Positions 30,319 through 43,077 are shown, counted from the stretch's first letter. The stretch: 64,000 nucleotides of DNA from IMGVR_UViG_3300035156_000206:227968-291967, one strand, 5' to 3'. Translations and numbers: made by a program. Notes: a model not told the origin generated them from the sequence alone.

Positions 30319-30414
30319 TGGCGGAAAAAGTGGGGCTCGAACCCACACACCCCATCCCTGGAGCCTTCGGTTTTCAAGACCGCTGCCGCTAGTCCTCGCT
30401 CGGCTAATTTTTCC
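30319..30414 (-). tRNA. tRNA-Ser(TGA)
   Basis: Anticodon loop CTTGAAA, long variable arm, GCCA end. Confidence 0.9.
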
Positions 30415-30442
30415 TTTGTTCTGGCTTTTGTAATATGCTATG

Positions 30443-30527
30443 CTGTGTAGGTAGGGATCGAACCTACAGTTGGCAATTAAGCCGTCTCATTAACAGTGAG
30501 GTGCCTTACCGTTCGGCGCACTACACA
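30443..30527 (-). tRNA. tRNA-Asn(GTT) with long variable arm, no encoded CCA
   Basis: Loop CTGTTAA; variable arm GGC-TTAATT-GCC; acceptor stem extended to a 15 bp inverted repeat. Confidence 0.75.
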
Positions 30528-30556
30528 GCATAGCATACTACAGGTAATGCACTTTG

Positions 30557-30631
30557 TCTGGATGGTTGGATTCGAACCAACGTCCTCCCGCATCCAAGGC
30601 GGGCCGTCTACCAGGCTGACAATACACCCAG
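30557..30631 (-). tRNA. tRNA-Pro(TGG)
   Basis: Loop CTTGGAT, canonical arms. Confidence 0.88.
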
Positions 30632-30658
30632 ACAAAATGCACTACTAAATTTGTTTTG

Positions 30659-30731
30659 CTGACAAACCTGGGTTCGAACCAGGGACCCTCTGATTAACAG
30701 TCAGACGCTCTGCCAGCTGAGCTATATGTCA
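30659..30731 (-). tRNA. tRNA-Asn(GTT)
   Basis: Loop CTGTTAA, canonical D and T arms, no CCA. Confidence 0.85.
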
Positions 30732-30744
30732 GCAAAACAAACTA

Positions 30745-30822
30745 TGGTCTCTCGTGCTGGATTCGAACCAGCGTTATGCTCCGCCCCAAACGGAGTGCCA
30801 TACCAGACTAGGCGAACGAGAG
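30745..30822 (-). tRNA. tRNA-Pro(TGG)
   Basis: Loop TTTGGGG, ACCA end. Confidence 0.9.
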
Positions 30823-30850
30823 ATTGATACTTCTAAAACAAACAGACAAT

Positions 30851-30878
30851 AAAAAAGGGCCTCTTGTGGAGGCCCTTT
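30851..30878 (-). terminator. attenuator 1 terminator
   Basis: AAAGGGCCTC-CACAA-GAGGCCCTTT plus T tract, 28 nt before the first tRNA. Confidence 0.92.
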
Positions 30879-30908
30879 CAAAATTTTGTAACATCTTCTA
30901 TGGATGCT

Positions 30909-31022
30909 TTACATTTTGGTAAGACCTCTGAGGGCGATAGTTGAATTCGACGGACGCGAAGCAACAACCGGGTTATTCACCGGGTTGGAATTGCTATTTG
31001 AGTTGCGGACGAATGATTTCAT
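30909..31022 (-). CDS. 37-aa leader peptide MKSFVRNSNSNSNPVNNPVVASRPSNSTIALRGLTKM
   Basis: 7 Asn, 7 Ser, 3 Pro; its 3' end (GAGGTCTT, 30921-30928) can pair with the terminator 5' arm. Confidence 0.75.
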   Translation of the reverse strand: MKSFVRNSNSNSNPVNNPVVASRPSNSTIALRGLTKM

Positions 31023-31048
31023 GATTAACCTAAATGTGTTTGTATTTC

Positions 31049-31054
31049 TATTTA
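31049..31054 (-). promoter_or_regulatory. TAAATA late-type promoter for leader 1
   Basis: 27 nt upstream of the leader ATG. Confidence 0.6.
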
Positions 31055-31059
31055 TTATC

Positions 31060-31425
31060 AAGCCCCAAACGGGAACTGTGAGGGTACAAAAGGGTTTGGC
31101 CTGCCGGCCTTTCACCAGCTACGTTTTCGGCGCCAGATGGGTTGAGTACCATCAAGGACTTACATGCTTGCAACCCATTGACTGCTTACGAATGAGTGGA
31201 GGGCTATTACACCCTCCGTGCCTTTCGGCGAACTACAACGTCCTGACTGATACCAAGTCGTTTATACCCAGACGTTGCCACAAAAGGTATAACACTTAGG
31301 CTCTGCATCAGCACAATGTGACGATAGGGGCTCCGCTCTTCTGTTGCCGTATGGGACCACATTGCTAACCCACGAAAGGTTTAATGGAGCCGGCTCCAGG
31401 ACTAGTGGAGAGTCTTCCGGCATTG
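31060..31425 (-). ncRNA. putative structured ncRNA(s)
   Basis: Stems GCAACGTC/GACGTTGT, GCC-GAAA-GGC, GGAGGG/CCCTCC, GCTGG-TGAAA-GGCCGGC; no credible ORF. Confidence 0.5.
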
Positions 31426-31427
31426 AC

Positions 31428-31611
31428 TGGTGTTCCTTCAGGGAATCGAACCCACTTTTCTTGCATACCTCAGCGCACTTCATGATCCATCCAGGTCACT
31501 ATCTTCACCTACTTCCGCATTACTTGCCCGGTCCAGCCTAACACACTGATTTAACTTTCGCCCCAGGCCGGATGGTTGCCTGTGGTCAGTGATATAGCCC
31601 GAGGAAGGAAC
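31428..31611 (-). ncRNA. tRNA-ended RNA with about 140 nt interior
   Basis: GTTCCTTC/GAAGGAAC-A-CCA stem with GGG-TTCGATT-CCC T loop. Confidence 0.55.
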
Positions 31612-31616
31612 TTGTT

Positions 31617-31690
31617 TGGAGCGGGTAGAGAGAATCGAACTCTCGTCTTGAGCTTGGAAGGCTCTTGATCTGCCACTGACCTATACCCGC
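31617..31690 (-). tRNA. tRNA-Gly(TCC)
   Basis: Loop CTTCCAA, TCCA end. Confidence 0.93.
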
Positions 31691-31762
31691 ATTGTTCTTA
31701 CACCGCTTATTATGTACCGAGCGGATGTCACGGTAACCTCTTCCTACCAATGGTAGGTGAGC

Positions 31763-32098
31763 TTATTCAGCTGCTGGACTCGCTTTTGCGACATCAACCA
31801 CTTTGGCTTTTTTGCCTTTGTGTTTGTGCTCCTTAGGAGTTTCCACTACTTTTGTCTCTTCGACAACAGCAGTTTCAGCTGGTACTTCAACTTCTTTTTG
31901 TTCTTCGACCACTAGTACTTCAACTTCAACAACTGGGACAACTACTTCTTTTTGCTCTTCAACTACTGGAGCGACAACTGGAGCGACAACTGGAGCGACA
32001 ACTGGAGCGACAACTGGAGCGACAACTGGGGCAACTACTTCCGCTGGCGGAGCGTACGGGGCCGGCGTTGGCTGTAACGTAAAACCTTTGAGTTCCAT
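31763..32098 (-). CDS. low-complexity Val/Pro/Glu protein
   Basis: AGGA RBS; 12-bp tandem repeat (ACTGGAGCGACA) encoding VVAP. Confidence 0.65.
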   Translation of the reverse strand: MELKGFTLQPTPAPYAPPAEVVAPVVAPVVAPVVAPVVAPVVAPVVEEQKEVVVPVVEVEVLVVEEQKEVEVPAETAVVEETKVVETPKEHKHKGKKAKVVDVAKASPAAE

Positions 32099-32174
32099 AA
32101 TGGTTCCTATCATAGATGTGTGATCTATTTAGACAGAAACACTTTCAAAGGGACCTGGGTCCCTCTGAACTATC

Positions 32175-32426
32175 TTACGACTGCCATGACTTTGCTTCTT
32201 TTGCTGCCAATGCGGCTGCTGCAGCTGCGTCAGCGGCCAGGGCTGCTGTCAGAGGAGCACCGGTCAGGGTTGCTAAGAATGTCACACGAGCTGCTGCGAG
32301 AGCGGCTTGGTCGGTAACGTACTTTGCAGTAATTTCCTTCATGATGCCTTCTTTAACCCACAACTTGCGCTGTTTCAGCAACAGAGTGGTTGGGTCGTAT
32401 TGGGCTGGGGTGTTAACTAATGCCAT
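32175..32426 (-). CDS. Ala-rich small protein (probably late)
   Basis: AAGGA RBS; TAAATA at 32456-32461. Confidence 0.7.
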   Translation of the reverse strand: MALVNTPAQYDPTTLLLKQRKLWVKEGIMKEITAKYVTDQAALAAARVTFLATLTGAPLTAALAADAAAAAALAAKEAKSWQS

Positions 32427-32488
32427 AATGTTTTCCTTTTAAGAGGGTTGTCCTCTATTTATGGAATACATCACAGATACTACAAATA

Positions 32489-32563
32489 TGGCAGGCAAGC
32501 AAGGAATCGAACCTCAGACTGATGGTTTGGAGCCACCCGTTTTACCACTGAAACTACTCACCC
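32489..32563 (-). tRNA. tRNA-Trp(CCA)
   Basis: Loop CTCCAAA, GCCA end. Confidence 0.9.
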
Positions 32564-32573
32564 GTTGTACATC

Positions 32574-32648
32574 TTATTCCCAGTTGCGAACAATAATGCT
32601 CACTACCAAGGCTATTGCAAGCAGCCCTACAACATAAATCGCTGTCAT
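32574..32648 (-). CDS. 24-aa membrane micropeptide MTAIYVVGLLAIALVVSIIVRNWE
   Basis: Directly behind the promoter at 32682-32710. Confidence 0.45.
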   Translation of the reverse strand: MTAIYVVGLLAIALVVSIIVRNWE

Positions 32649-32681
32649 ATTTAATGTTCCGTTTGCAAATGCATGAGAAGA

Positions 32682-32710
32682 AGTATATATGATTGTTTTT
32701 CAACTGTCAA
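32682..32710 (-). promoter_or_regulatory. sigma70 promoter TTGACA-N17-TATACT
   Basis: Direct reading; lies upstream of tRNA-Trp and tRNA-Gly. Confidence 0.85.
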
Positions 32711-32726
32711 CAGTTATTTTTCTGGG

Positions 32727-33056
32727 TCACAATGTATGGTGGTCTACCAACACATCCCCAGGGAACAATACCTGGGTATCGCATTCCTTTTTCAATCGGA
32801 TCTGCATTTCAGTCATTTCTGGACGGCGACTCATCTTGCACATCCGCGTCATGAAGATGGCATACCCAGCACACTGCTGAGCTTTGTGGGGAGCAATGTC
32901 CGGGCCACCTGGTTGGGTGACCGTCATGTGGCAGGCGAAAGGAATGTCCGCTCGTACCAAGTCGACGAAGTCTTGTGGATCGTGTTCACCAACCCATCCC
33001 TTCATTTTGCCCACATAGGGACATTCAGCACAAGGCTCTTTAAGATCGTGTTTCAT
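32727..33056 (-). CDS. Cys/His-rich zinc-binding hypothetical protein
   Basis: PCAECPY...FACHMT...QQCAG. Confidence 0.75.
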   Translation of the reverse strand: MKHDLKEPCAECPYVGKMKGWVGEHDPQDFVDLVRADIPFACHMTVTQPGGPDIAPHKAQQCAGYAIFMTRMCKMSRRPEMTEMQIRLKKECDTQVLFPGDVLVDHHTL

Positions 33057-33769
33057 GCAAGTTCAGCCCAAAATGCAGCGGCCTGCACAACTTGCTTTAC
33101 TTTATGCAAGTCAAACTCGTTGTCCGTACGAATACCAGTTTCCATGTCTGCCCAATATGGCACAGCATGGGCTTCCATCGTCACAATTGCTTGTTCGATG
33201 TTGCTTGGGCCAAGTCCACCAGCAAACCCACAAAACATGTGTTCCAATCCCTCGGGCAGTTCCCAATTGTCAGGAGATTGCCCGCGGCCGCGCGAGTCGT
33301 CCATCAGGATGTGGACCCGGCCTCGGTCAACATTTTGCAATGAATTGATGAAAGAGGTGATGACGGATGCCGTCCCTGCATGGTATTGCAGAATAACAGC
33401 TGGGCTGATGTCCATTGCACGCTTGTACACATCAAGCACCTGGGACGTTGTGAAACTGGGCTTGCGAGCATTGATGTTGAGCTGCATGCGGTCCGCATAT
33501 TCCAGCTCAGCAGGCAATTGATTAGCCAGAAGCTGTTCGAACGCCAGGTCACCGCAAAGGTGGATAGCATTGTGCCCCGGCAATTGCATATCGAAGAACT
33601 CTTGTCGCCAACGTTGTGAAGGATTGCGCTGTTTGCCCTCCGTATACGGCGAATACAGCAATGCCCACTCAATGAAGGAGAATTCGGTGCTCAGATTGGC
33701 CAAATCAAGCAAAAGGGTATTGTCGTCTGCTCCGGTGAGCGACAGGCGGTCGAGGTATACAGGTTTCAT
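33053..33769 (-). CDS. TrpF/PRAI-like TIM-barrel protein
   Basis: SLTGADD, ILMDDSRGRG, GFAGGLGPSNI, WADMETGIRT motifs. Confidence 0.7.
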   Translation of the reverse strand: MKPVYLDRLSLTGADDNTLLLDLANLSTEFSFIEWALLYSPYTEGKQRNPSQRWRQEFFDMQLPGHNAIHLCGDLAFEQLLANQLPAELEYADRMQLNINARKPSFTTSQVLDVYKRAMDISPAVILQYHAGTASVITSFINSLQNVDRGRVHILMDDSRGRGQSPDNWELPEGLEHMFCGFAGGLGPSNIEQAIVTMEAHAVPYWADMETGIRTDNEFDLHKVKQVVQAAAFWAELA

Positions 33770-34005
33770 AGGATGCGATCTAGCACTTTCAGGTTGGGGC
33801 GTTTGTCAAAATACACCTGGCACGTGATGCAATACTTGCACCCTACTTGTGCCTCGCGACGAGCTTGAGGGATTGGGTCATGGCATTCGCGGCAGAACTT
33901 ATTGCTTGGACCAGTTGGTAACATCAACCGAGCAATGTCGATGGCATTTTCTACCATTGCCATCGCGTTGACTGATTCGTCGTCTGCTCCGCCGTAACCG
34001 CTCAT
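33766..34005 (-). CDS. DksA/TraR-type C4 zinc-finger protein
   Basis: CRECHDPIPQARREAQVGCKYCITCQ. Confidence 0.9.
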   Translation of the reverse strand: MSGYGGADDESVNAMAMVENAIDIARLMLPTGPSNKFCRECHDPIPQARREAQVGCKYCITCQVYFDKRPNLKVLDRIL

Positions 34006-34008
34006 TGT

Positions 34009-34368
34009 TTACCCTTTTTCCATTACCGTAATGCCATTATCACCCTTTTGCACAAAAATGTCAACGGGGTCCGACTTTGAAGCAGCAGCAATGGCTAGGA
34101 TCTTGTTGTATGTGGTCCTGCGGATGACAAGGGTTGTCAATTGTTCTTCACGTACACCATTCACAATACGGTGGACGCCTATGTGCACGTCCTTTGAGAG
34201 AGGCCAGCCCAGCTCGCACATCTGACAATCAAGAGGTTCTTGCATGCGCAAGGCTTGCTCAAGTGGCATGAACAAATCAGGGACACGTTCCTCGAATTTG
34301 ATGAGCGATGTGGATGGTTCAGGATCTCTCCAGAAGTGCAGATCTGGGGCTGTCATACTTTGACCCAT
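34009..34368 (-). CDS. hypothetical protein
   Basis: ORF track. Confidence 0.6.
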   Translation of the reverse strand: MGQSMTAPDLHFWRDPEPSTSLIKFEERVPDLFMPLEQALRMQEPLDCQMCELGWPLSKDVHIGVHRIVNGVREEQLTTLVIRRTTYNKILAIAAASKSDPVDIFVQKGDNGITVMEKG

Positions 34369-34832
34369 TCGGAAAATGGTATCATTGCAAGGGTGCTGTT
34401 GCTATACCGGAAGTCATTGGATACTTCTGCACCAACCCAATGAGGCTTGACAAAGCGCTGGGACTCATCATCCAGTTCCACTTCGACAGTGATCAACCCC
34501 TTGTTGACGCCCAAGAACTCATCAACTTCCCAGATCAGACCATCAAATTTGATCAGGCTCCGAATCTTGTCGATTGTGTGAGTTCCGTCCGCACGCAGGT
34601 CAAATAACTGCAGGGCATCTTCTTGGTGGAGTTCCACCTCTACCTCTGTACGTGACAAACCAACAGGCTTACCCTTGATGCCAAGGATGTGACTGTCACC
34701 ATCGATGCGCACTCGAACGGTGCGGGCTGGGTCTGTGGAAATATACCACTGTTGCATCCGCCGCTTGGACATCACAACATCACGCCAACCATCATCTGTG
34801 ACTAGGAACTTACGCTCAATCTCGATACCCAT
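34353..34832 (-). CDS. CYTH-domain triphosphatase / adenylate cyclase-like protein
   Basis: EIERKFLV, VRVRI, KIRSL, WEVDEF, YSNSTL. Confidence 0.92.
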   Translation of the reverse strand: MGIEIERKFLVTDDGWRDVVMSKRRMQQWYISTDPARTVRVRIDGDSHILGIKGKPVGLSRTEVEVELHQEDALQLFDLRADGTHTIDKIRSLIKFDGLIWEVDEFLGVNKGLITVEVELDDESQRFVKPHWVGAEVSNDFRYSNSTLAMIPFSEWVKV

Positions 34833-34959
34833 AATATTCCTCGTAAACGATTAGCAAATGCATTTGGAAATGCAGCAAACTTCATTATACGCGGTGTAAA
34901 CAAGATTATCAACAAGGATCGTAAAAAGAAAAACCCGCACAAGGCGGGTTCTCTAATTC

Positions 34960-35036
34960 TGGCGGAGTTGACGGGACTCGAACCCGCGACCTCTACCGTG
35001 ACAGGGTAGCGCTCTAACCAGCTGAGCTACAACTCC
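34960..35036 (-). tRNA. tRNA-Asp(GTC)
   Basis: Loop CTGTCAC; own TAAATA at 35045-35050 and a terminator near 34930. Confidence 0.95.
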
Positions 35037-35074
35037 AGAATGTTTATTTATGCTTCACTTTTTCAGATGTATTT

Positions 35075-35152
35075 TGGCGGTAGCTCTGGTTATTCAACAG
35101 CCAGGAAAGATAGCTGAACACTACTAACTAGTCTTCGTGCCCAAAGCCACCA
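35075..35152 (-). ncRNA. CCA-ended stem RNA
   Basis: 11-bp GGTGGCTTTGG/CCAGAGCTACC stem plus GCCA; no T loop. Confidence 0.5.
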
Positions 35153-35181
35153 CAGAATACGACTGCTAATGCACATTTGTT

Positions 35182-35255
35182 TGGGTTGAGAGACGGGAAT
35201 CGAACCCGCGCTACTTCCGTCACAAGGAAGGGCTCTACCATTGAGCTACTCCCAA
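35182..35255 (-). tRNA. tRNA-His(GTG)
   Basis: Loop TTGTGAC, C discriminator plus CCA. Confidence 0.9.
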
Positions 35256-35266
35256 ACAAATGTGCA

Positions 35267-35464
35267 CTACAAGTACACCATCCTACCTTCAATCATTTTG
35301 CCCCGTACCCTTCCGGTACCTTCACAGGAAGAACATTTGGGGCTTCTTCCTGAGTCGTATCTACCAGAACCATTGCATGCAACACAGGGAAATAACTTGA
35401 ACCCGTGCACATGCATATGGTAATGTGCAAACCGACGTGCTTTACGTATCGCGAAATCGCTCAT
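35267..35464 (-). CDS. DnaJ-type zinc-finger small protein
   Basis: CVACNGSG...CSSCEGTG. Confidence 0.75.
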   Translation of the reverse strand: MSDFAIRKARRFAHYHMHVHGFKLFPCVACNGSGRYDSGRSPKCSSCEGTGRVRGKMIEGRMVYL

Positions 35465-35732
35465 GTCTCATTGACTCTATGTAATCTTCAATCTCATTGT
35501 ACTGCATGCTGCGTGGTCGCACGATTACAAGGTATTCTCCTTTGTAGTCTGGGCTGCGATCTTTTAGGATCTTGAATGCGCCCGTAACATCAATGACAAT
35601 GCACCGATGTGCTTCACAGATGTCACGCATGGTTAGCTTTACATCACCAATTGTGATCTCGGATAGGGGCAATTTCATCCCATCCTTGTGTAGATCTAAA
35701 TGGGTATACAAACGAAGTTCAATTGGCCGCAT
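35442..35732 (-). CDS. hypothetical protein
   Basis: ORF track. Confidence 0.6.
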   Translation of the reverse strand: MRPIELRLYTHLDLHKDGMKLPLSEITIGDVKLTMRDICEAHRCIVIDVTGAFKILKDRSPDYKGEYLVIVRPRSMQYNEIEDYIESMRHERFRDT

Positions 35733-35754
35733 GATATACCTGGTTACATTGTTG

Positions 35755-35841
35755 TGGAGTAGGGGACAGGATTTGAACCTGCGGTGCGCTTTCGCATCGA
35801 GATTTGCAGTCTCGCTCCTTCGACCACTCAGACACCCCTAC
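35755..35841 (-). tRNA. tRNA-Cys(GCA) with long variable arm
   Basis: Loop CTGCAAA; variable arm ATGC-GAAA-GCGC; TCCA end. Confidence 0.85.
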
Positions 35842-35847
35842 ATTGTT

Positions 35848-36204
35848 CTATTCTGCTACTAAGGCTGTCTTGGCCTCAGTTTCTGCTCGCTTGACCTTTG
35901 ACGCACCATCTATCAGAGCAAACATCTGATCCATATTCAGGTCGCACATCCCTTTCGGGCAATTCATTTTTGCATACCTGTCAACTGGTACTTGGATGTC
36001 CTTGTAGATGAACATTAGCTCATCGTGCTTGAGAATGCCATCTATTACCATCAACCGGAACTGATTTACCATCACATCCGAGCCAACACAAACATTGGAC
36101 ACACTTTCGTCACAGTAATTCTCGATCCACTTCAGCACGCGTTTTGCTACTTGGCCATCAGGGACTACAGTCCCGTATTGCTCATCATATTCAACATACA
36201 GCAT
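35848..36204 (-). CDS. hypothetical protein
   Basis: AAGGAG RBS; start at 36204. Confidence 0.75.
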   Translation of the reverse strand: MLYVEYDEQYGTVVPDGQVAKRVLKWIENYCDESVSNVCVGSDVMVNQFRLMVIDGILKHDELMFIYKDIQVPVDRYAKMNCPKGMCDLNMDQMFALIDGASKVKRAETEAKTALVAE

Positions 36205-36213
36205 ATTACTCCT

Positions 36214-36289
36214 TGGTAGAGATAGTTGGATTCGAACCAACGTAGCCTTCCTTATGAGGGAAGTTCATAAACCACTCTGACACATCTCC
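36214..36289 (-). tRNA. tRNA-Met/Ile2(CAT)
   Basis: Loop CTCATAA, ACCA end. Confidence 0.88.
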
Positions 36290-36295
36290 AGCGAT

Positions 36296-36414
36296 TGGTG
36301 GAAGAGGGACCTGTCGTAGGCTATCGACTCCCTTTGCACTACCCTTAGCCTTCACATCCATAACCGCCTGCGCAGGCTCTATGGGTAGCTCCAGTTAGAG
36401 TACCGTTAACTTCC
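36296..36414 (-). ncRNA. CCA-ended structured RNA
   Basis: GGAAG/CTTCC-A-CCA; inner stems GCTACCC/GGGTAGT, GCCTG/CAGGC, GTCG/CGAC. Confidence 0.5.
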
Positions 36415-36420
36415 ATTGTT

Positions 36421-36496
36421 TGGCACGGGATCTAGGATTCGAACCTAGGACCTACGCAGTCAAAGTGCGTTGCTCTACCAGCTGAGCTAATCCCGA
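36421..36496 (-). tRNA. tRNA-Gln(TTG)
   Basis: Loop CTTTGAC, GCCA end. Confidence 0.92.
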
Positions 36497-36925: not shown

Positions 36926-37009
36926 ACCATGTACCGGGGATTCGAACCCACGTTAATCGCCGCTTGACCTGTTACCATGAACCTTACTGTGAGGCGATTA
37001 CATCCATGG
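36926..37009 (-). ncRNA. tRNA-like RNA lacking canonical D and anticodon arms
   Basis: CCATG/CATGG ends, T loop GGG-TTCGAAT-CCC, AATCGCC/GGCGATT stem. Confidence 0.5.
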
Positions 37010-37046
37010 AGTCCGTACATGACTTAAAAACTCGTATTACAAATTT

Positions 37047-37234
37047 TATAATGGTCGGGCTCTTCAAAATATGCATATTGCCTGGGAGGGAGTCAAACCC
37101 TACCGTCTCTCCCAGTAGTCGCCTAAAAGGCTTTCTGGAAGCATCCATTGTCGCTGGACCACATGCTACACATTTCGATCTGGCCAGATACTCAACAGTG
37201 TCTAGAATTTGTTGAGCAGAGCCCGATCATTATA
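37047..37234 (-). ncRNA. 188-nt stem-closed ncRNA
   Basis: 17-bp closing stem TATAATGATCGGGCTCT/AGAGCCCGACCATTATA. Confidence 0.55.
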
Positions 37235-37240
37235 AAACTT

Positions 37241-37315
37241 TGGTGCCGCTAATTGGTATCGAACCAATCTCCCTGGGGTTTCAGGCCAGTGCTAATCCAT
37301 CTCAGCTACAGCGGC
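37241..37315 (-). tRNA. tRNA-Phe(GAA)
   Basis: Loop CTGAAAC, ACCA end. Confidence 0.88.
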
Positions 37316-37333
37316 ATGGTAAAGCCACTAAAG

Positions 37334-37543
37334 TCACTTTTCATTTTGTTTCTTTCTCCACGCATATGTGCGTTCAAGTGCTGCATCTAATAAAACTTGG
37401 TCAATTTTGCCAGCCACAATGTAGTGCTCGTAACAAACATCACAACATGCAAAGCAATGTTTTATGTTCGAACCCACTACATGACAATTACATATACAGG
37501 CTGTGATTGATTCTCCCAGCCATGTAAATGTGCGCTTACTCAT
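37334..37543 (-). CDS. Cys-rich hypothetical protein
   Basis: ORF track. Confidence 0.55.
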   Translation of the reverse strand: MSKRTFTWLGESITACICNCHVVGSNIKHCFACCDVCYEHYIVAGKIDQVLLDAALERTYAWRKKQNEK

Positions 37544-37651
37544 TTCTTCATGACCCTTGACATTAAGTCATTGTAAACTGCCATGACAGGGTCATTTCGC
37601 ATCTTGCGTGCTTCTCGGGATGCTTTTGCATCCTCATACATCTTTAGGTAA

Positions 37652-37873
37652 TCAGGGACAGCTCTTGGATCCATTTGTTTCTCCTACAGGTATAACTTCA
37701 TCACTATCAACGGAAATGATAACCATTTCCGACTTTTCCCGTGCCTTGACCAATGGATTTACTTTCCAAGGGTAGCAACACGGAACACAATGTAGTATTG
37801 TGCCTTCTGGGTACCGATGACAAGCACAACTACATTTCTGCTCTTCATATACCATCGGAATGATCGCAGCCAT
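37652..37873 (-). CDS. Cys-rich hypothetical protein
   Basis: CSCACH...HCVPCC. Confidence 0.65.
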   Translation of the reverse strand: MAAIIPMVYEEQKCSCACHRYPEGTILHCVPCCYPWKVNPLVKAREKSEMVIISVDSDEVIPVGETNGSKSCP

Positions 37874-38172
37874 TACTCTTCGTCCATTGGCACTTCAACA
37901 GCATCATTTGCGTTGAACTTGCGCTCATTGTTGCGGCGCTTCGTCCAACCATAATCCGCCGCCACCTGGGCCACACCCATCTTCCCAACTTGGTTAGGAT
38001 TCTGGCTTACCATCGTCACAAAAGTGTGACCCAGGTCGTCTCGGTGCTTGCGAACACATTCAAGTGCTCCAACAAGATCATTATCACCGAAATCTGAGAA
38101 ATGAGCAACATTAATGTTGTCGTTTCCTGTCTTACCACCTAAAAAACTTTCAGTCCAATAGACTCGAAACAT
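37873..38172 (-). CDS. hypothetical protein
   Basis: Overlapping stop/start codons. Confidence 0.75.
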   Translation of the reverse strand: MFRVYWTESFLGGKTGNDNINVAHFSDFGDNDLVGALECVRKHRDDLGHTFVTMVSQNPNQVGKMGVAQVAADYGWTKRRNNERKFNANDAVEVPMDEE

Positions 38173-38537
38173 TACTTTCCTTGGCCTCGCGGCAAATTCA
38201 GTTCAAGAGCAGCGCGTTCCAACATGTCATCATTTGGTAAGGCATCAGTACCATACTTGGCGCTTACTTCCTTTGGCGACATTGTCACCGGGCCAAATAC
38301 AACCTTCATTACCTGAACCGAATCAACATACCGCTTCCCACCTTTACCTTCAGCCTTAGCGATGTGCGCTGCTGCCTGAATCAAACATGGGATGCTTGCA
38401 TGGATGTCATATTCAAAGGTGATCTCCGTATTAGCCTTTTCATCCCTAGGACCAGATACTGCATCGGTTGGGGTGTTTACGCCTTTTGGATCACCAGAAC
38501 CTGGCAAACGCATTTCTTTCAATTCAATCAACTTCAT
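38172..38537 (-). CDS. hypothetical protein
   Basis: AAGGAG RBS. Confidence 0.75.
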   Translation of the reverse strand: MKLIELKEMRLPGSGDPKGVNTPTDAVSGPRDEKANTEITFEYDIHASIPCLIQAAAHIAKAEGKGGKRYVDSVQVMKVVFGPVTMSPKEVSAKYGTDALPNDDMLERAALELNLPRGQGK

Positions 38538-38563
38538 GTTAGCTCCTTAGTTACAGTATTGTA

Positions 38564-38773
38564 TCACCTATTTACTGAAGAGTCAACATCAAGTTCCTTA
38601 TTTGGTACTGCATCTTTGATTTTCAGGTCATTAAACTTGTCAATGACCTCCATGGGTATCGATTCGTACTTGAACTCCGATTCCCCTGGCTTTTGTTCGT
38701 TTCGTTCTTCTTGGTCACAACCTGCACATGACCCACCGCTACCTGAGTAGCCATGATAGTAACAATCCGCCAT
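38564..38773 (-). CDS. hypothetical protein
   Basis: ORF track. Confidence 0.6.
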   Translation of the reverse strand: MADCYYHGYSGSGGSCAGCDQEERNEQKPGESEFKYESIPMEVIDKFNDLKIKDAVPNKELDVDSSVNR

Positions 38774-38784
38774 CTTTTATCCTT

Positions 38785-38867
38785 TGGTGCCCCCGCAGAG
38801 ACTCGAACTCTGAAAGGCGCGGCTTCTGAGGCCGCTAGCTGTACCAATTTGCATTAGCCACAGGGGC
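38785..38867 (-). tRNA. tRNA-Leu(CAG) with short variable loop and enlarged D loop
   Basis: Loop CTCAGAA, ACCA end. Confidence 0.85.
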
Positions 38868-38869
38868 GT

Positions 38870-39052
38870 TTATCGTAAAGTACCAATAAAATCTTGGTAA
38901 TCTTTAACCTGACGCACAATTTGTTCGTGGATGCGCTTCAAATCAGCTTCATCCGTATACGTCTCAATTGTACCATCAAGATACTCTACTACAGCCTTTC
39001 GGCCTGGCTCAACCGCGATGTCTTCATAATCCACCGATTTGATGAGCTTCAT
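38870..39052 (-). CDS. hypothetical protein
   Basis: ATGA-coupled. Confidence 0.65.
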   Translation of the reverse strand: MKLIKSVDYEDIAVEPGRKAVVEYLDGTIETYTDEADLKRIHEQIVRQVKDYQDFIGTLR

Positions 39053-39219
39053 TCGTCGTCATCCTCGTACTGACGATACTCATCTTGAGCACATTCATAA
39101 CCTTGCCAGTTATCAACACCAGCATTGCGCAGACAGTTTAGGAACAGACTGTCGTCATACAACTTTTCATACTCTGCCACAGACATCGTGACCACATCAT
39201 CTTTAATTTCAATAGCCAT
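39049..39219 (-). CDS. 56-aa acidic phage protein (not in ORF track)
   Basis: MAIEIKDDVV...AGVDNWQGYECAQ; GAAGG RBS. Confidence 0.7.
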   Translation of the reverse strand: MAIEIKDDVVTMSVAEYEKLYDDSLFLNCLRNAGVDNWQGYECAQDEYRQYEDDDE

Positions 39220-39234
39220 TTGCTACCTTCATTA

Positions 39235-39321
39235 TGGTGCGAGTAGAGGGACTCGAACCCCCACGATATTCCTACCGCCAGGACCTAAACCTGGTGCGTC
39301 TACCAATTTCGCCATACTCGC
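39235..39321 (-). tRNA. tRNA-Leu(TAG)
   Basis: Loop TTTAGGT, long variable arm, ACCA end. Confidence 0.93.
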
Positions 39322-39341
39322 ATGCTTCAAACAACAAAATC

Positions 39342-39450
39342 TGGGGGGAGTGAGGGGAGTCGAACCCCATGATGGAACGTCATGCCTGGACAACCCGACG
39401 CCTGGTGGTGTCCCCATCTTCCCGCATACTGAGCCCGCACTGCACTCCCC
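39342..39450 (-). ncRNA. tRNA-like RNA with 8-bp acceptor stem and no anticodon loop
   Basis: GGGGAGTG/CACTCCCC, T loop GGGG-TTCGACT-CCCC. Confidence 0.55.
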
Positions 39451-39459
39451 ATTGTTACA

Positions 39460-39606
39460 TTTGTAGCAACCGGTACTGATCTCCGGTTTGTCCCCAAGCC
39501 GTATGAGGCCGCTTACAAGGGGTTCGGGCATTACGTAGAACAAGGTGGCCACACCTACGCAACCTCTTTTATGTTCCCGCGCATCAGTCTGCGCATTTGC
39601 TACAAA
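39460..39606 (-). ncRNA. 147-nt stem-closed ncRNA
   Basis: TTTGTAGCAA/TTGCTACAAA closing stem with four internal hairpins. Confidence 0.55.
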
Positions 39607-39609
39607 ATC

Positions 39610-39780
39610 TTCGCTTTAGGCTTTCACCTACCCTGGCCTTGAGGCTGCGTATGAAGAGTACCGATCCATGCCGATACCTCCGAGCAATCGCTAAGTTGAT
39701 TCACTCTTCGGTTTCCCGAACGCTGATCAAGCGCTGCCTAGAAGGGCCGTATAATAATTTACAACCCCACGTACAATTGC
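39610..39780 (-). ncRNA. putative structured ncRNA
   Basis: TCGG-GAAA-CCGA, GAAGAGT/ACTCTTC, TAGG-TGAAAG-CCTA. Confidence 0.4.
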
Positions 39781-39785
39781 GAAAC

Positions 39786-39915
39786 TGGTGCCGGCGGCTG
39801 GAATCGAACCCGCAAGAACTGCTTTTCACACAGTCTCATCACCCTGAGCATCAACTGGGACTAGTACTCCAGTCTATCTCTTATCGATGCTACCCTTTTG
39901 CATGGGGCGTCCGGC
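39786..39915 (-). ncRNA. tRNA-ended RNA with enlarged interior
   Basis: GCCGG/CCGGC-A-CCA, TTCGATT T loop, AGCATCGA/TTGATGCT arm. Confidence 0.55.
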
Positions 39916-39921
39916 ATATCT

Positions 39922-39999
39922 TGGTGGATGCGAAGGGAATCGAACCCTCATGCCCCGCTACTACCGTTTGTCCAGGATGACCTAGGCGGGAGCGCACCC
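39922..39999 (-). ncRNA. tRNA-like RNA without canonical D or anticodon arms
   Basis: GGGTGCG/CGCATCC-A-CCA, GAGGG-TTCGATT-CCCTT, CCCGC/GCGGG. Confidence 0.55.
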
Positions 40000-40006
40000 A
40001 ATGTTA

Positions 40007-40082
40007 TGGTGGAGGATGCCGGGATCGAACCGGCCACCTGATGCTTGCAAAGCACCCGCTCTCCCAAATGAGCTAATCCCCC
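40007..40082 (-). tRNA. tRNA-Ala(TGC)
   Basis: Loop TTTGCAA, G3-U70 pair, ACCA end. Confidence 0.95.
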
Positions 40083-40087
40083 AAATT

Positions 40088-40366
40088 CTATACTACTTGA
40101 ATCTTTACCTTCTTGATCTCGATCGTGTCGAGTGCCTTAAGCTGTTCATCAAGGGAAGCAAGTTTTTCTTTCTTTTGTGCTCGTGAAAAGAAGCTACTCT
40201 TCGTTTCCACCAGCTTTTTCTTCTCGTACTCGAGGTTGCTACGAACCTGATTGATGTTTCGTACCACTGATGGTCTGTGAGCGTACAACTTATCAGGCGC
40301 AGTCCACATGTTCAGAATCGAACCATCAGGGAAAACCCCAACATACATCTCGTCATCAATATTCAA
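40088..40366 (-). CDS. hypothetical coiled-coil protein
   Basis: TTG start after GGAG. Confidence 0.65.
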   Translation of the reverse strand: MNIDDEMYVGVFPDGSILNMWTAPDKLYAHRPSVVRNINQVRSNLEYEKKKLVETKSSFFSRAQKKEKLASLDEQLKALDTIEIKKVKIQVV

Positions 40367-40399
40367 GGTCTTCTCCAAGTTCTTAATGAGACATCCTAT

Positions 40400-40477
40400 C
40401 GAACAAAGAGGAATCGAACCTCTTGAGCCCAACCGCGGATGTGGAGAACGTACCCAACTGCTTCCGTTACTTTGCTC
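40400..40477 (-). pseudogene. degenerate tRNA
   Basis: AGAGG-TTCGATT-CCTCT T arm and GAGCAA/TTGTTC stem only. Confidence 0.4.
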
Positions 40478-40588
40478 TCTTCCTAGGTGCTTCCGGCGAT
40501 ATTGAAGTCTCGGCCGGTACCAGCCTTCCTTCTCGACGTGCCATCTTCAATCTAGTCGCCCAGTGTTTCACGTTAAGGGTGTCTCATT

Positions 40589-40788
40589 AAAAACTCTTGT
40601 TACAGTAACCATGCCAGGCAGGGTAATGCTCCCCGAACTCCGCGCGCAAAAGGTGGAGTCAACATCTGTGATACTAACCACTTACAGGTACTTGCTAGGT
40701 TTACTAATTGGCGGCATAGGGGCCCCTACTACCAACTTTCACTTCGTTTTCGCTATCCATGTTTAGGCTACTGAAACAAGAACTCTTT
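40589..40788 (-). ncRNA. 200-nt stem-closed ncRNA
   Basis: Imperfect closing helix of about 22 bp (AAAGAGTTCTTGTTTCAGTAGCC with GGTTACTGTAACAAGAGTTTTT). Confidence 0.5.
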
Positions 40789-40789
40789 A

Positions 40790-40868
40790 TGTGAGACCAG
40801 GCGGGATTCGAACCCACGGCCCTCCGCCATCACTGGCGGTGCTCATCCCACTCGAGCTCACCGGTCCC
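40790..40868 (-). ncRNA. tRNA body whose anticodon loop is a GNRA tetraloop
   Basis: Normal D and T arms, 8-bp acceptor stem, CCGCCA-GTGA-TGGCGG. Confidence 0.65.
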
Positions 40869-40879
40869 CCATTATTCTT

Positions 40880-40955
40880 TGGAGGGGCGGGGTGGAATCG
40901 AACCACCGACCTCCTGGATTAACCCTGGCGCTCTCTCCCCCGAGCTTGCCGCCCC
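40880..40955 (-). tRNA. non-canonical tRNA with 6-nt anticodon loop GTTAAT
   Basis: GGGGCGG/CCGCCCC-T-CCA, D and T arms intact; identity not assignable. Confidence 0.5.
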
Positions 40956-40961
40956 ACAACT

Positions 40962-41036
40962 TGGTGGACAGTGTAGGGATCGAACCTACGACCAATGCCT
41001 TGTAAGGGCACCGCTCTACCGCTGAGCTAACCGTCC
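40962..41036 (-). tRNA. tRNA-Val(TAC)
   Basis: Loop CTTACAA, ACCA end. Confidence 0.93.
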
Positions 41037-41096
41037 GTATTTCTTACTACTTGTTCATTTTACTGCTGATGTTCTCAAAAGACAACATCTAAATTC

Positions 41097-41172
41097 TGGT
41101 AGTTAGAACAGGGCTCGAACCTGTGACCTGTGGTTTATCGAACCACTGCTCTACCAACTGAGCTATCTAACT
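41097..41172 (-). tRNA. tRNA-Ile(GAT), C33 variant
   Basis: Loop TCGATAA, ACCA end. Confidence 0.88.
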
Positions 41173-41176
41173 AAAC

Positions 41177-41250
41177 TGGTGTTGTGTTCAGGAGTTTAAC
41201 CTGAGTCTCTCCCAGGAAGAGGGAACATCCTAACACTAGACGAACACAAC
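41177..41250 (-). tRNA. tRNA-Glu(TTC), atypical loop
   Basis: Loop TCTTCCT, T loop TTAAACT, ACCA end. Confidence 0.7.
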
Positions 41251-41272
41251 GATGAAACGGTACAACAAAATC

Positions 41273-41348
41273 TGGGTGCGTCCCCGAGGAGTTGAACCTC
41301 GCTTAAGCTCTCTATACGTAGCCTGCCCTAGCACTAGACGAAAGACGC
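41273..41348 (-). ncRNA. Glu-type tRNA body with 10-nt anticodon loop
   Basis: D arm GTCTAGTGCTAGG as in the neighbouring tRNA; loop ACGTATAGAG. Confidence 0.5.
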
Positions 41349-41352
41349 GGTG

Positions 41353-41541
41353 TTACTCTGCCGAAAACCTTGATGCCAGGATGATGATTCTCTCTTCACC
41401 ACCATCTGTTTGGATAATGACACCATTACCCATTACACCCAGTATTTCGTACTTCTTTCCTATTGTCAACATAGGGTGAAACTTTTTAGCATCACACAAT
41501 GATTGTAGAATCATACTGCATCCATTCAAACAAGACAACAT
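41353..41541 (-). CDS. hypothetical protein
   Basis: ORF track; start uncertain. Confidence 0.5.
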   Translation of the reverse strand: MLSCLNGCSMILQSLCDAKKFHPMLTIGKKYEILGVMGNGVIIQTDGGEERIIILASRFSAE

Positions 41542-41549
41542 TTAAAATC

Positions 41550-41627
41550 TGGTATGGATAACGGAATTCGAATCCGTGTTTGCAGAGTGAAAGTCTGCCG
41601 TCCTAGTCCTATCTAGACGATATCCAT
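41550..41627 (-). tRNA. tRNA-Glu(TTC)
   Basis: Loop CTTTCAC, ACCA end. Confidence 0.92.
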
Positions 41628-41633
41628 ATTGTA

Positions 41634-41888
41634 CTACTTTTTAACCTTCTCGTACTGCACACCATCAATCACCACTACTGCTTTCGGTGACTTTTCTTGT
41701 GTGACCGTTGATGTTGAACTATTCGGACATCGAACAACCGTGATTGCATTTCCGTTTGTGTTCCTCATGTATGTAAAGGAACAATCGTTCAAGTGCTCGG
41801 GCACCGAATACCGCGTCTTCGAATCTTCGGTTGTTGCTTCACATCCTGCTACCAACACGCATAATACCACTGCCGCAACCTTGTTCAT
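41634..41888 (-). CDS. putative lipoprotein
   Basis: Lipobox LVAGC; VVRCPNSSTST. Confidence 0.75.
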   Translation of the reverse strand: MNKVAAVVLCVLVAGCEATTEDSKTRYSVPEHLNDCSFTYMRNTNGNAITVVRCPNSSTSTVTQEKSPKAVVVIDGVQYEKVKK

Positions 41889-42334
41889 TTGATACCTTGT
41901 TGTGTAAACTTCTGGTCACTTAGGTCGATCTTAACGATCTTGCTTTCGTCCCTTGTCTCTGCATCAATGAAAATGGTTCGTAACACAACCCATTCCCCAA
42001 CAAATGAAACTGGAACAATAAGGTAATCAATTACAAACTCGACCCTTCCAATCTTTTCACCATTAACATATCGGGTATGAAAGTAAAGCAACTCACACAA
42101 CCCATAATTAACAATGCGCTTTAGCAGCTTTCCTAGACGATCTGCATTGTCTTTGGTAATCCGCTCCTTCATCCTATCAATCGCATGGCTCGACAGCTTT
42201 AGCTTGAACCGCGTGTGATAATCAATCAGGTCAAATACTTCAAGCAGTTTCTGGTTCAATGGAACCATCAAATGCCGGTTTAGTGTTTTATTGTCGTATT
42301 CCATGTGGTGTATTCTACAACATGTTCTATTCAA
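41885..42334 (-). CDS. hypothetical protein, possible RelE/DUF4258-like fold
   Basis: LSSHAIDRMKER and VVLRTIF motifs; start probably the later MEYDN. Confidence 0.55.
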   Translation of the reverse strand: MNRTCCRIHHMEYDNKTLNRHLMVPLNQKLLEVFDLIDYHTRFKLKLSSHAIDRMKERITKDNADRLGKLLKRIVNYGLCELLYFHTRYVNGEKIGRVEFVIDYLIVPVSFVGEWVVLRTIFIDAETRDESKIVKIDLSDQKFTQQGIK

Positions 42335-42354
42335 AAATCAACAACTATTTGTTC

Positions 42355-42439
42355 TGGTGGATCATGATGGAGTCGAACCACCTATGACTAGCATGCTTGC
42401 GGGTTACAGCCGCACCCCTTACCGTTCGGGCAACGATCC
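42355..42439 (-). tRNA. tRNA-Tyr(GTA)
   Basis: Loop CTGTAAC, long variable arm. Confidence 0.92.
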
Positions 42440-42446
42440 AATGTTC

Positions 42447-42531
42447 TGGTGGGTTGGGTAGGGATCGAACCTACTTACCATAAGGAACGGGGGTTACAGC
42501 CCCGCAGCACGACCTTTGTGCCATCCAACCC
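42447..42531 (-). tRNA. tRNA-Tyr(GTA)
   Basis: Loop CTGTAAC, long variable arm. Confidence 0.9.
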
Positions 42532-42539
42532 GGTATTCT

Positions 42540-42758
42540 TTACTTCAACTTCTTGATGTCCATTTTCAGGTCAGCGATCTTTCGCATGGTGCCTGGTACG
42601 TCAAATGCTGGACCCTTACCCTTTTGTTGCAAAGCGAGCTTCATTTCTGACTCGAGCTGTACAACACGGGCTTCCAGGTTTGCAATCTTCTTATCGTTCT
42701 TGGCCATCATAAACTCCTGTTGTTGTGTTAATGAATCAACATGATACATCTTAAACAC
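42540..42758 (-). CDS. small coiled-coil protein
   Basis: AGGAG RBS before MMAK. Confidence 0.65.
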   Translation of the reverse strand: MFKMYHVDSLTQQQEFMMAKNDKKIANLEARVVQLESEMKLALQQKGKGPAFDVPGTMRKIADLKMDIKKLK

Positions 42759-42778
42759 GTTTACTGCAACTTCTAATT

Positions 42779-42853
42779 TGGTAGGGCCGGAGGAGCTCGA
42801 ATCCTCTTTTGCTGGTTAAAAGCCAGCTACTTCACCGTTAAAGTTTCAACCCC
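42779..42853 (-). tRNA. tRNA-Lys(TTT)
   Basis: Loop CTTTTAA, ACCA end. Confidence 0.92.
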
Positions 42854-42867
42854 AAAATTCGGATAAC

Positions 42868-42899
42868 AAAAAAGAGCACCGTCTTTCGAGGGTGCTCTT
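42868..42899 (-). terminator. attenuator 2 terminator
   Basis: AAGAGCACC-loop-GGTGCTCTT plus T tract, 15 nt before tRNA-Lys. Confidence 0.92.
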
Positions 42900-42921
42900 G
42901 TCGTTGGAATAAAATGGAGGT

Positions 42922-43035
42922 TTACTTCTTAGACACTCCACCTTTGACAAAAGCACACACGCGTTTATATTGGGCAGCATACGCTACTTCAATAATAAAC
43001 ATCTCGTGTTGTTCTAGTTGGCAAAGGGTAAACAT
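42922..43035 (-). CDS. 37-aa leader peptide MFTLCQLEQHEMFIIEVAYAAQYKRVCAFVKGGVSKK (not in ORF track)
   Basis: GTGCTTTTGTC (42946-42956) pairs 11 of 11 with GACAAGAGCAC, which overlaps the terminator 5' arm. Confidence 0.75.
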   Translation of the reverse strand: MFTLCQLEQHEMFIIEVAYAAQYKRVCAFVKGGVSKK

Positions 43036-43071
43036 TTTATAATCCAAGTGTTGGGTGATTCGTTATAATGC

Positions 43072-43077
43072 TATTTA
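43072..43077 (-). promoter_or_regulatory. TAAATA late-type promoter for leader 2
   Basis: 37 nt upstream of the leader ATG. Confidence 0.6.

Follow-up and report, generated by a model that had tools for sequence, protein, structure and literature searches.

Ribosome-mediated transcription attenuators are well established for the amino-acid operons of Enterobacteria. In the thr, ilvGMEDA and ilvBN systems, and also in trp, his, leu and pheA, a promoter is followed by a short ORF enriched in regulatory codons, by an intrinsic terminator, and by a leader segment that can pair with the 5' arm of the terminator. More than one amino acid can be sensed, as in thr (Thr and Ile) and ilv (Leu, Val and Ile). 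Leader-peptide attenuation also controls a component of the translation apparatus in the pheST operon of E. coli, in which the pheM leader responds to the supply of the cognate charged tRNA. In T-box riboswitches, a terminator/antiterminator decision is driven by tRNA status, and the controlled genes act in tRNA charging and amino-acid supply. In the tRNA regions of phages T4 and T5, tRNA genes are interleaved with small ORFs, promoters and terminators, and phage tRNAs are thought to offset codon-usage mismatch or host tRNA depletion (PMC10264068). In the present study, two small ORFs that precede tRNA gene arrays in a jumbo phage were examined. No prior description of such control for tRNA genes was found.

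Architecture of the two leader cassettes

The window analysed was a 64,000-nucleotide stretch (IMGVR_UViG_3300035156_000206:227968-291967), which is the end of a 292-kb XacN1-like jumbo phage contig from a biocrust metagenome. The features of the two cassettes lie on the minus strand. Both ORFs contain 37 codons plus a stop codon and have the same architecture, namely, a TAAATA promoter-like motif, the small ORF, a strong intrinsic terminator and a closely following tRNA. Leader 1 (30909-31022) starts 26 nt downstream of a TAAATA motif (31049-31054) and has a weak Shine-Dalgarno (SD) sequence (AGGT). Its terminator (30851-30884) comprises a hairpin at 30857-30875 (dG -13.3), a six-U run at 30851-30856 and the 5' flank. 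The tRNA array behind it (30319-30822) encodes Pro(UGG), Asn(GUU), Pro(UGG), Asn(GUU) and Ser(UGA), and the first tRNA-Pro starts 34 nt after the start of the U-run (28 nt after its end). A strong terminator (30117-30147, dG -18.1) closes the unit. Leader 1 was not called as a gene in public collections.

Leader 2 (42922-43035) starts 36 nt downstream of its TAAATA motif (43072-43077) and also has a weak SD (TGGA). Its terminator (42868-42902) comprises a hairpin at 42874-42897 (dG -13.6), a U-run at 42868-42873 and the 5' flank at 42892-42902. The first gene behind it is a tRNA-Lys(UUU) (42779-42853), 20 nt after the start of the U-run. This gene was missed by ARAGORN at default settings, but it was scored at 48.5 bits by Rfam RF00005, and ARAGORN at a lowered threshold gave a cloverleaf with anticodon UUU. 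The rest of the array (34960-42531) is interleaved with small ORFs and contains, in order, tRNAs for Tyr (two copies), Glu, a Glu-like tRNA, Ile, Val, an odd tRNA with a 6-nt anticodon loop, Ala, Leu(UAG), Phe, Gln (two copies), Met, Cys, His and Asp. No strong terminator was found on this strand between 42868 and 34953. The limits of this 8-kb array were set by predicted terminators. Internal promoter-like sites exist, so that the reach of leader 2 control is not known.

No sigma70-like site or TAAATA motif was found in the spacer between terminator and tRNA in either cassette. Of 41 small-ORF-plus-terminator candidates in the whole 292-kb contig, only these two have TAAATA upstream and a tRNA immediately downstream. 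Genome-wide, TAAATA is followed by an SD, a start codon and an ORF in 47 of 119 cases, against 7-22% for permuted hexamers (30% for the overlapping ATAAAT). The octamer is AATAAATA for leader 1 and ACTAAATA for leader 2, compared with the T4-type late promoter consensus TATAAATA; the promoter function of the motif is inferred.

The separate signals named in the preliminary description were confirmed. A TAAATA motif (35045-35050) lies directly upstream of tRNA-Asp (34960-35036), which is followed by a strong terminator (34929-34953), the first strong stop after the terminator of leader 2. A sigma70-like site (TTGACA-17-TATACT, 11 of 12 matches) lies at 32682-32710, upstream of tRNA-Trp (32489-32563).

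Correspondence between leader codons and tRNA arrays

The preliminary description proposed that the residues absent from the two leaders partition the genetic code to match the tRNA units. Its factual statements were correct: leader 1 lacks C, D, E, H, Q, W and Y, and leader 2 lacks D, N, P and W. However, this argument is weak on its own. A 37-aa segment of the proteins of this phage lacks 4.6 amino acids on average (range 2-8), and thus the four absences of leader 2 are ordinary. The partition is also not complete: Thr, Arg and Gly are covered by neither leader, and leader 1 has 20 non-cognate residues.

The strong signal is positive enrichment. In leader 1, 17 of 37 residues are Asn, Pro or Ser (binomial P 1.4e-5), a level reached in 0.26% of 37-aa segments of real proteins and in none of the 841 other small ORFs. 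Fifteen of 36 codons are readable by the five downstream tRNAs, and all of them lie in codons 3-27, which form the sensor part. In leader 2, 32 of 37 residues belong to the amino-acid set of its array (Lys, Tyr, Glu, Ile, Val, Ala, Leu, Phe, Gln, Met, Cys and His), with P 2.3e-4, or 2.6e-3 if Asp is counted, and 29 of 36 codons after the start are readable by the downstream tRNAs. The partition statistic has P 3e-4.

The two tests named in the preliminary description, co-evolution in relatives and a permutation test, were both carried out, and both supported a matched sensor. Cassettes in the IMG/VR relatives G002 (four cassettes), G003 and G006, in Ralstonia phage RsoM2USA, and probably in XacN1 have unrelated sensor parts that follow their own arrays. 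Several relatives (G001, G004, Xoo-sp13 and RAS14) showed no clear cassette. In an unbiased scan of 113 upstream ORFs in 9 phages, 6 reached z>=4 against 0.4 expected, and leader 1 had the top score (z = 5.2). The true pairing of 7 non-homologous leaders and arrays was the best of 5040 permutations at codon level. Moreover, an inclusive test of 13 architecture-defined cassettes, good or bad, gave P = 2.5e-5; every cassette with a terminator of dG <= -12 had z >= 2.5, whereas those with weak hairpins had z near 0. The signal exists only in the ORF frame, with a summed z of 38.4, compared with -3.8 to +1.2 in the other five frames.

These results bear on the possibility that the hairpins are leaky terminators or insulators at the ends of upstream transcription units, with small ORFs that are untranslated or irrelevant and a match that is a by-product or chance. 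The weak SD sequences of leaders 1 and 2, the absence of a gene call for leader 1, and the abundance of small ORFs in phage tRNA regions are in line with this view. Furthermore, in more distant phages a consensus sigma70 promoter sits between the equivalent terminator and the array, and the leader/array match there is weak or untestable; the module therefore does not gate the array everywhere. Nevertheless, the match is frame-specific, recurs in at least five phages with different arrays, and is absent from the other small ORFs upstream of tRNAs and from T5, with joint probabilities of about 1e-5. The G002 and G003 leaders also have GGAG at ideal spacing. Hence, this explanation was considered improbable.

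It is less likely still that the 37-aa products are functional peptides in their own right, such as small regulators or membrane peptides, placed next to tRNA arrays incidentally. Leader 2 was predicted as a gene in IMG, and both leaders and the RsoM2USA leader have exactly 37 codons. However, no homologues were found by tblastn, the clusters are singletons, and peptide sequences are not conserved between cassettes except where RNA pairing is. A composition that tracks the array is not expected of a peptide with its own function.

Leader-terminator complementarity and the proposed attenuation mechanism

A candidate antiterminator segment was identified in each leader. In leader 1 (30913-30929), it consists of AGAGGUCUUA (codons 32-34) plus CCAAAAU, which runs to the last sense codon just before the stop codon. 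It pairs with the terminator 5' arm AGGGCCUC and with AUUUUG at 30879-30884 once the 3' arm is withheld. Against shuffles, P was 0.02 with the long arm and 0.06-0.11 with the short arm, and this leader was the best partner of its own arm among 9 leaders. In leader 2, the segment GUGCUUUUGUC (42946-42956, codons 27-30) pairs over 11 bp, including one G-U, with 42892-42902 (P = 0.0085-0.028 for dinucleotide shuffles and 0.11 for codon permutation). Taken alone, these pairings are only marginal, and about 10% of other terminators in the genome reach the same duplex energy. At the family level, the leader 3' segment was complementary to the terminator 5' arm in all 7 cassettes tested (Fisher P 2e-8 for dinucleotide shuffles and 1e-7 for codon permutation). 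Its own leader was the best partner for 6 of 9 arms (permutation P 1e-5), and the true pairing was the best of 5040 for 7 non-homologous cassettes. The segment always lies in the last third of the ORF, after the cognate codons. Hairpins were also predicted inside the sensor parts, without comparison with a null.

The cassettes appear modular. G002c (one of the four G002 cassettes), G003 and G006 share a homologous C-terminal and terminator module, but their sensor parts differ to match different arrays, and leader codons change together with the terminator arm. Leader 1 shares its stop-codon region with another G002 cassette, G002d. Leader 2 shares its terminator loop (CGAAAG) and the sequence after the U-run with the RsoM2USA cassette, while the stems differ completely.

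According to these results, leader 1 and leader 2 are probably the leader peptides of two multivalent ribosome-mediated transcription attenuators that gate tRNA arrays, and a probability of about 0.65 was assigned to this reading. The transcription units, promoter identity, translation of the ORFs, the direction of the switch and any regulation in vivo are inferred, in the absence of expression, ribosome or termination data; RNA runs matched only tRNA pieces from other organisms. In the proposed model, transcription starts at or upstream of the TAAATA motif, and a ribosome begins translating the ORF behind the polymerase. The first two thirds of each ORF is made mostly of codons read by the tRNAs encoded just downstream. 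If those charged tRNAs are plentiful, the ribosome would keep pace and run over the 3' third of the ORF, which contains a copy of the terminator's 3' arm; with this segment masked, the terminator hairpin would form and transcription would stop 20-34 nt before the first tRNA. If any of the monitored tRNAs is scarce, the ribosome would stall in the sensor part, and the free 3' segment would pair with the terminator's 5' arm as an antiterminator. The polymerase would then read through into the array and make more of exactly those tRNAs. The candidate antiterminator of leader 2 lies 23-33 nt before the stop codon and would not be covered by a ribosome parked at the stop, so the model needs tight ribosome-polymerase coupling. 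The result would be demand-driven feedback on tRNA supply with two channels in the window, one for Asn/Pro/Ser and one for twelve amino acids. What would be sensed is the total charged-tRNA supply seen by a ribosome, not specifically the host tRNA pools suggested in the preliminary description, and the sensor described there as designed is better regarded as evolved.

The codon match and the architecture require some link between translating the leader and the array, but they do not fix its mechanism or sign. Another readout may operate, such as protection from Rho, control of precursor processing or stability at the terminator hairpin, or the opposite polarity, in which good translation promotes read-through. 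A conserved pre-tRNA 5' leader motif of unknown role follows the terminator in relatives. However, the leader-specific complementarity to the terminator's 5' arm and its position downstream of the cognate codons are predicted by classical attenuation and are not required by the alternatives, and the terminators are canonical intrinsic ones with 5-6 U. These variants were thus regarded as unlikely, although they ranked above the other rival explanations.

More tentatively, the cassettes may be a modular, evolvable family of multivalent attenuators in which a conserved terminator/antiterminator chassis carries an exchangeable sensor, rewritten whenever the tRNA array behind it changes. Their role could be an inducible counter-defence, in which the phage detects, codon by codon, the depletion of particular tRNAs by host responses such as anticodon nucleases or tRNA degradation, and answers by transcribing replacement tRNAs for exactly those codons.

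Comparison with known regulatory systems

The proposed logic is that of the trp, his, thr and ilv attenuators. Compared with the enterobacterial operon attenuators, the genes proposed to be regulated here are tRNA genes instead of biosynthetic enzymes, the candidate antiterminator segment lies inside the ORF, and the element is in a virus. Up to twelve amino acids would be monitored with one to four codons each, which is unlike classical attenuators with runs of one codon. A cmscan search of 29500-44500 at E<=1 gave no match to Rfam leader families at leader 1 or leader 2; the only hits were sub-threshold Thr and Leu leader matches at an unrelated bidirectional terminator (29655-29841). The pheST attenuator controls an aminoacyl-tRNA synthetase, senses a single amino acid and is cellular. 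A T-box binds uncharged tRNA directly through a specifier codon and the T-box sequence, with no translation; no T-box was detected here in the same search, and the signal in these cassettes is a frame-specific ORF composition. In phage T5, annotated promoters sit directly before the tRNAs, no such cassette is present, and no upstream small ORF matches its array, with the highest z being 1.96 among 11 ORFs.

Genomic context and anatomy of the two leader cassettes

The phage contig of 291,967 bp in IMG/VR was derived from a biocrust metagenome, and the 64-kb window is its last part. The major capsid protein was 62-65% identical to those of Xanthomonas phages XacN1 and Xoo-sp13 and Stenotrophomonas phages CM1 and RAS14, and 50% identical to that of Ralstonia phage RsoM2USA, so the virus is an XacN1-like jumbo myovirus. 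All 23 tRNAs called by ARAGORN in the window were on the minus strand. Two more, at 42782-42853 and 41180-41250, were added by Rfam, and at a lowered ARAGORN threshold these were tRNA-Lys(UUU) and a Glu(UUC)-like tRNA. The latter (41177-41250, minus strand) is a second gene of its type and carries C instead of U at position 33. The lowered threshold also gave a tRNA-like gene with anticodon CUA at 38789-38867 (minus strand), a possible amber suppressor; annotated suppressor tRNAs are carried by the relatives XacN1, RAS14 and RsoM2USA. A tRNA with a 6-nt anticodon loop at 40880-40955 (minus strand), reported by ARAGORN with the two-base anticodon 'ta', could be a pseudo-tRNA or an unusual decoder. 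A tRNA/tmRNA acceptor-like element was located inside the array at 39922-39999 (minus strand). A second tRNA group and a tmRNA are present near the other end of the contig, and the full tmRNA (G000:C1:8650-9044, in the coordinates of this phage contig) has the tag ANDSQFKVAAYA.

Protein genes were also found in the middle of the tRNA region. A CYTH domain protein, a DksA/TraR zinc-finger protein and a PRAI-like protein are encoded at 32727-34832 (minus strand), the first two of which hint at nucleotide-signalling or transcription control. A 116-aa ORF with tandem PVVA repeats (31763-32113, minus strand) lies between tRNA-Trp and tRNA-Gly. A collagen-like tail fibre (1124 aa), two tellurite-resistance-like genes and an RNA ligase are encoded at 113-12100.

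Leader 1 (30909-31022, minus strand) and leader 2 (42922-43035, minus strand), the two small ORFs of 37 codons each, had the same architecture. A TAAATAG motif lies 26 or 36 nt upstream of the ATG, the Shine-Dalgarno sequence is weak, and a canonical intrinsic terminator (dG about -13.5, six U) follows the stop. The first tRNA begins 34 nt (leader 1) or 20 nt (leader 2) after the start of the U-run. No sigma70-like site or TAAATA was found in that spacer, so the tRNAs would be made only by reading through the terminator, although the reach of leader 2 over its 8-kb array is set only by predicted terminators and internal promoter-like sites exist. A promoter between the leader 1 terminator and tRNA-Pro was rejected because the only -10-like hexamer would place the start inside the tRNA. 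A sigma70-like site (TTGACA-16-TATATT) lies antisense inside leader 2 at 42944-42971 (plus strand), which may be chance. Among 41 candidates with a small ORF and a terminator in the whole contig, only these two had TAAATA upstream and a tRNA immediately downstream. TAAATA was not over-represented in the window (18 observed against 19.3 expected), and only its position relative to gene starts was informative: it was followed by a Shine-Dalgarno sequence, start codon and ORF in 47 of 119 cases, against 7-22% for permuted hexamers. This is consistent with a T4-late-like promoter, but the assignment is an inference.

Leader composition and the tRNA arrays

The preliminary description, which stated that leader 2 lacks Asn, Pro, Asp and Trp and that leader 1 lacks Gln, Glu, Tyr, His, Cys, Trp and Asp, was correct in these compositions. 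It was also correct in placing a TAAATA motif before tRNA-Asp with its own terminator and a sigma70-like site before tRNA-Trp. However, the missing residues on which it relied prove little by themselves, since a 37-aa window of the proteins of this phage lacks 4.6 amino acids on average, and this argument was rejected as evidence on its own. The positive enrichment was the real signal. Leader 1 had 17 of 37 Asn+Pro+Ser residues in front of tRNA Pro-Asn-Pro-Asn-Ser (binomial P 1.4e-5), a value reached in 0.26% of 37-aa windows of real proteins and in none of the 841 other small ORFs. Leader 2 had 32 of 37 residues in the amino-acid set of its array (P 2.3e-4, or 2.6e-3 if Asp is included). The partition statistic over both leaders had P 3e-4.

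No close relative of either leader was found in the collections searched. Megablast and blastn against phages matched only tRNAs, tblastn of both peptides found nothing, an exact DNA pattern and the neighbouring proteins found nothing in IMG/VR, and the clusters at 90% were singletons. The architecture was therefore sought in larger related contigs found through the capsid protein and in cultured relatives. The cassette of small ORF, strong terminator and tRNA array recurred four times in G002 and also in G003 and G006 (all IMG/VR relatives), as well as in Ralstonia phage RsoM2USA, whose leader (MG752970 87248-87361) is unannotated in the record and again has 37 codons. Other cassettes had 31-34 codons. 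A further cassette, with 41 codons, is probable in XacN1; its hairpin has no U-run and it was found by the score-based scan. The fourth G002 cassette is followed by a ~120-nt tRNA-like RNA (L091:1395-1515, a locus of G002) with a perfect acceptor stem and CCA, which ARAGORN does not call. Some relatives had no recognisable cassette.

In each case the leader was different and followed its own array. A Gln/Arg/Ile/Val/Asp-rich leader stands before Gln-Gln-Asp-Arg-Val-Ile-Asp-Arg-Arg-Arg, a Phe/Thr/Pro/Ala/Glu/Trp/His/Met leader before Pro-Pro-Ala-Glu-Phe-Thr-His-Thr-Trp-Met, and an Asn/Val/Lys leader before Val-Asn-Lys-Lys-Lys, whereas in RsoM2USA an Asn/Ala/Phe/Gln-rich leader stands before Met-Ile-Asn-Asn-Gln-Lys-Arg-Phe-Ala-Val. 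In more distant IMG/VR phages, a consensus sigma70 promoter lies between the terminator and a conserved pre-tRNA 5' leader motif, and there the leader/array match was weak or untestable. This motif, CTGTTCATTAAAAATTTG, lies 2-13 nt before the first tRNA of an array in loci L092, L093, L091, L099, L109 and L171-L186 of the IMG/VR relatives. In the distant phages it starts right after the promoter, so it looks like the 5' end of the pre-tRNA transcript.

The match was evaluated by an unbiased scan of all 113 ATG ORFs of 20-60 aa that end within 160 nt upstream of a tRNA cluster, in 18 loci from 9 phages. Six ORFs reached z>=4 against 0.4 expected from cross-pairing, and leader 1 ranked first. 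An ORF of genome G005 with z = 4.6 has no terminator and was not counted as a cassette. At codon level with wobble rules, the true pairing of 7 non-homologous leaders with their arrays was the single best of all 5040 permutations. Moreover, a test of all 13 cassettes defined by architecture alone, weak ones included, gave a summed z of 31.6 against 2.9 +/- 6.0 (P 2.5e-5). Every cassette with a terminator of dG <= -12 had z >= 2.5, whereas the weak-hairpin ones had z near 0. The match existed only in the ORF frame, in which the summed z was 38.4, against -3.8 to +1.2 in the five other frames. Hence, base composition cannot explain it.

Leader-terminator complementarity and modularity

The folding of both leaders was explored with the 3' arm of the terminator withheld. 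Under this condition, a segment in the last third of the ORF paired with the 5' arm of the terminator. In leader 1 this candidate antiterminator was AGAGGUCUUA plus an inner CAAAAU/AUUUUG helix, and in leader 2 it was GUGCUUUUGUC against GACAAGAGCAC, with 11 bp. Taken alone these pairings were only marginal, with P 0.02-0.11 and 0.0085-0.11, respectively, against dinucleotide or codon shuffles, and about the tenth percentile of other terminators. Across seven cassettes, however, the pairing was always present and always lay downstream of the cognate codons (combined P 2e-8 to 1e-7). In a 9 x 9 matrix of leaders against terminator arms, the own leader of a cassette was the best partner for 6 arms, including that of leader 1, and ranked second or third for the other three, that of leader 2 among them. 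The permutation P was 1e-5, and for 7 non-homologous cassettes the true pairing was the best of 5040. According to codon-level maps, cognate codons filled the first two thirds of each ORF, and non-cognate codons filled the tail that carries the pairing segment.

The cassettes also appeared to be modular. G002c (one of the four G002 cassettes), G003 and G006 share a homologous C-terminal and terminator module, but their sensor parts differ and match different arrays. Leader codons in the pairing segment changed together with the terminator arm, for example CUUGG/CCAAG against CUUGUU/AACAAG. Leader 1 shares its last codons and stop region with G002d, another of the G002 cassettes. Leader 2 shares its terminator loop and the sequence after the U-run with RsoM2USA, while the stems are entirely different. 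A search of IMG/VR with this shared post-terminator sequence as a pattern gave 54 hits, none of which was next to a tRNA, so these are chance matches.

Attenuation as an interpretation and comparison with known systems

The simplest mechanism that accounts for these results is classical ribosome-mediated attenuation applied to tRNA arrays, although it is inferred from sequence and nothing here shows transcription, translation or regulation. A stall on a hungry sensor codon would leave the antiterminator segment free, and the polymerase would read into the array, whereas smooth translation would mask the segment and the terminator would form. The only sequencing run containing the locus was a DNA biocrust run, and four wastewater runs labelled as RNA, but flagged as probably DNA, matched only tRNA segments from other organisms. 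Under this interpretation, phage tRNA synthesis would respond to the supply of exactly the tRNAs it encodes, which fits the current view that phage tRNAs offset host tRNA depletion (PMC10264068).

The reason why phages carry tRNA genes has been debated for fifty years, and the regulation of those genes is almost unknown. A leader peptide that reads out ribosome speed on the same codons its array serves would mean that phage tRNA supply responds to demand, and would tie the codon-compensation and anti-defence hypotheses to a concrete, testable switch. The cassette is present in a cultured phage (RsoM2USA, and probably XacN1), so that it is directly testable. The modularity of sensor and chassis gives a rule for annotating transcription units in tRNA-rich phages and is a natural template for codon-specific translation sensors.

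No description of leader peptides, attenuators or terminators in front of phage tRNA genes was found in the full texts searched or in the XacN1 and RsoM2USA genome papers, although subscription journals were not covered and an older report, for example from the early T5 literature, cannot be excluded. As far as these searches show, the element would be the first leader-peptide attenuator that controls tRNA genes and the most multivalent one known. No matching Rfam family was found at either leader. A strong bidirectional terminator at 29717-29841 (dG about -19 to -20 on both strands) gave sub-threshold hits to the Rfam Thr and Leu leaders, but it is not related to the leaders studied. Phage T5, an unrelated tRNA-rich phage, showed nothing comparable to the match between leaders and arrays. 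The mechanism class proposed for the two leaders is textbook, whereas the regulated genes, the degree of multivalence, the viral setting and the modular sensor would be new.
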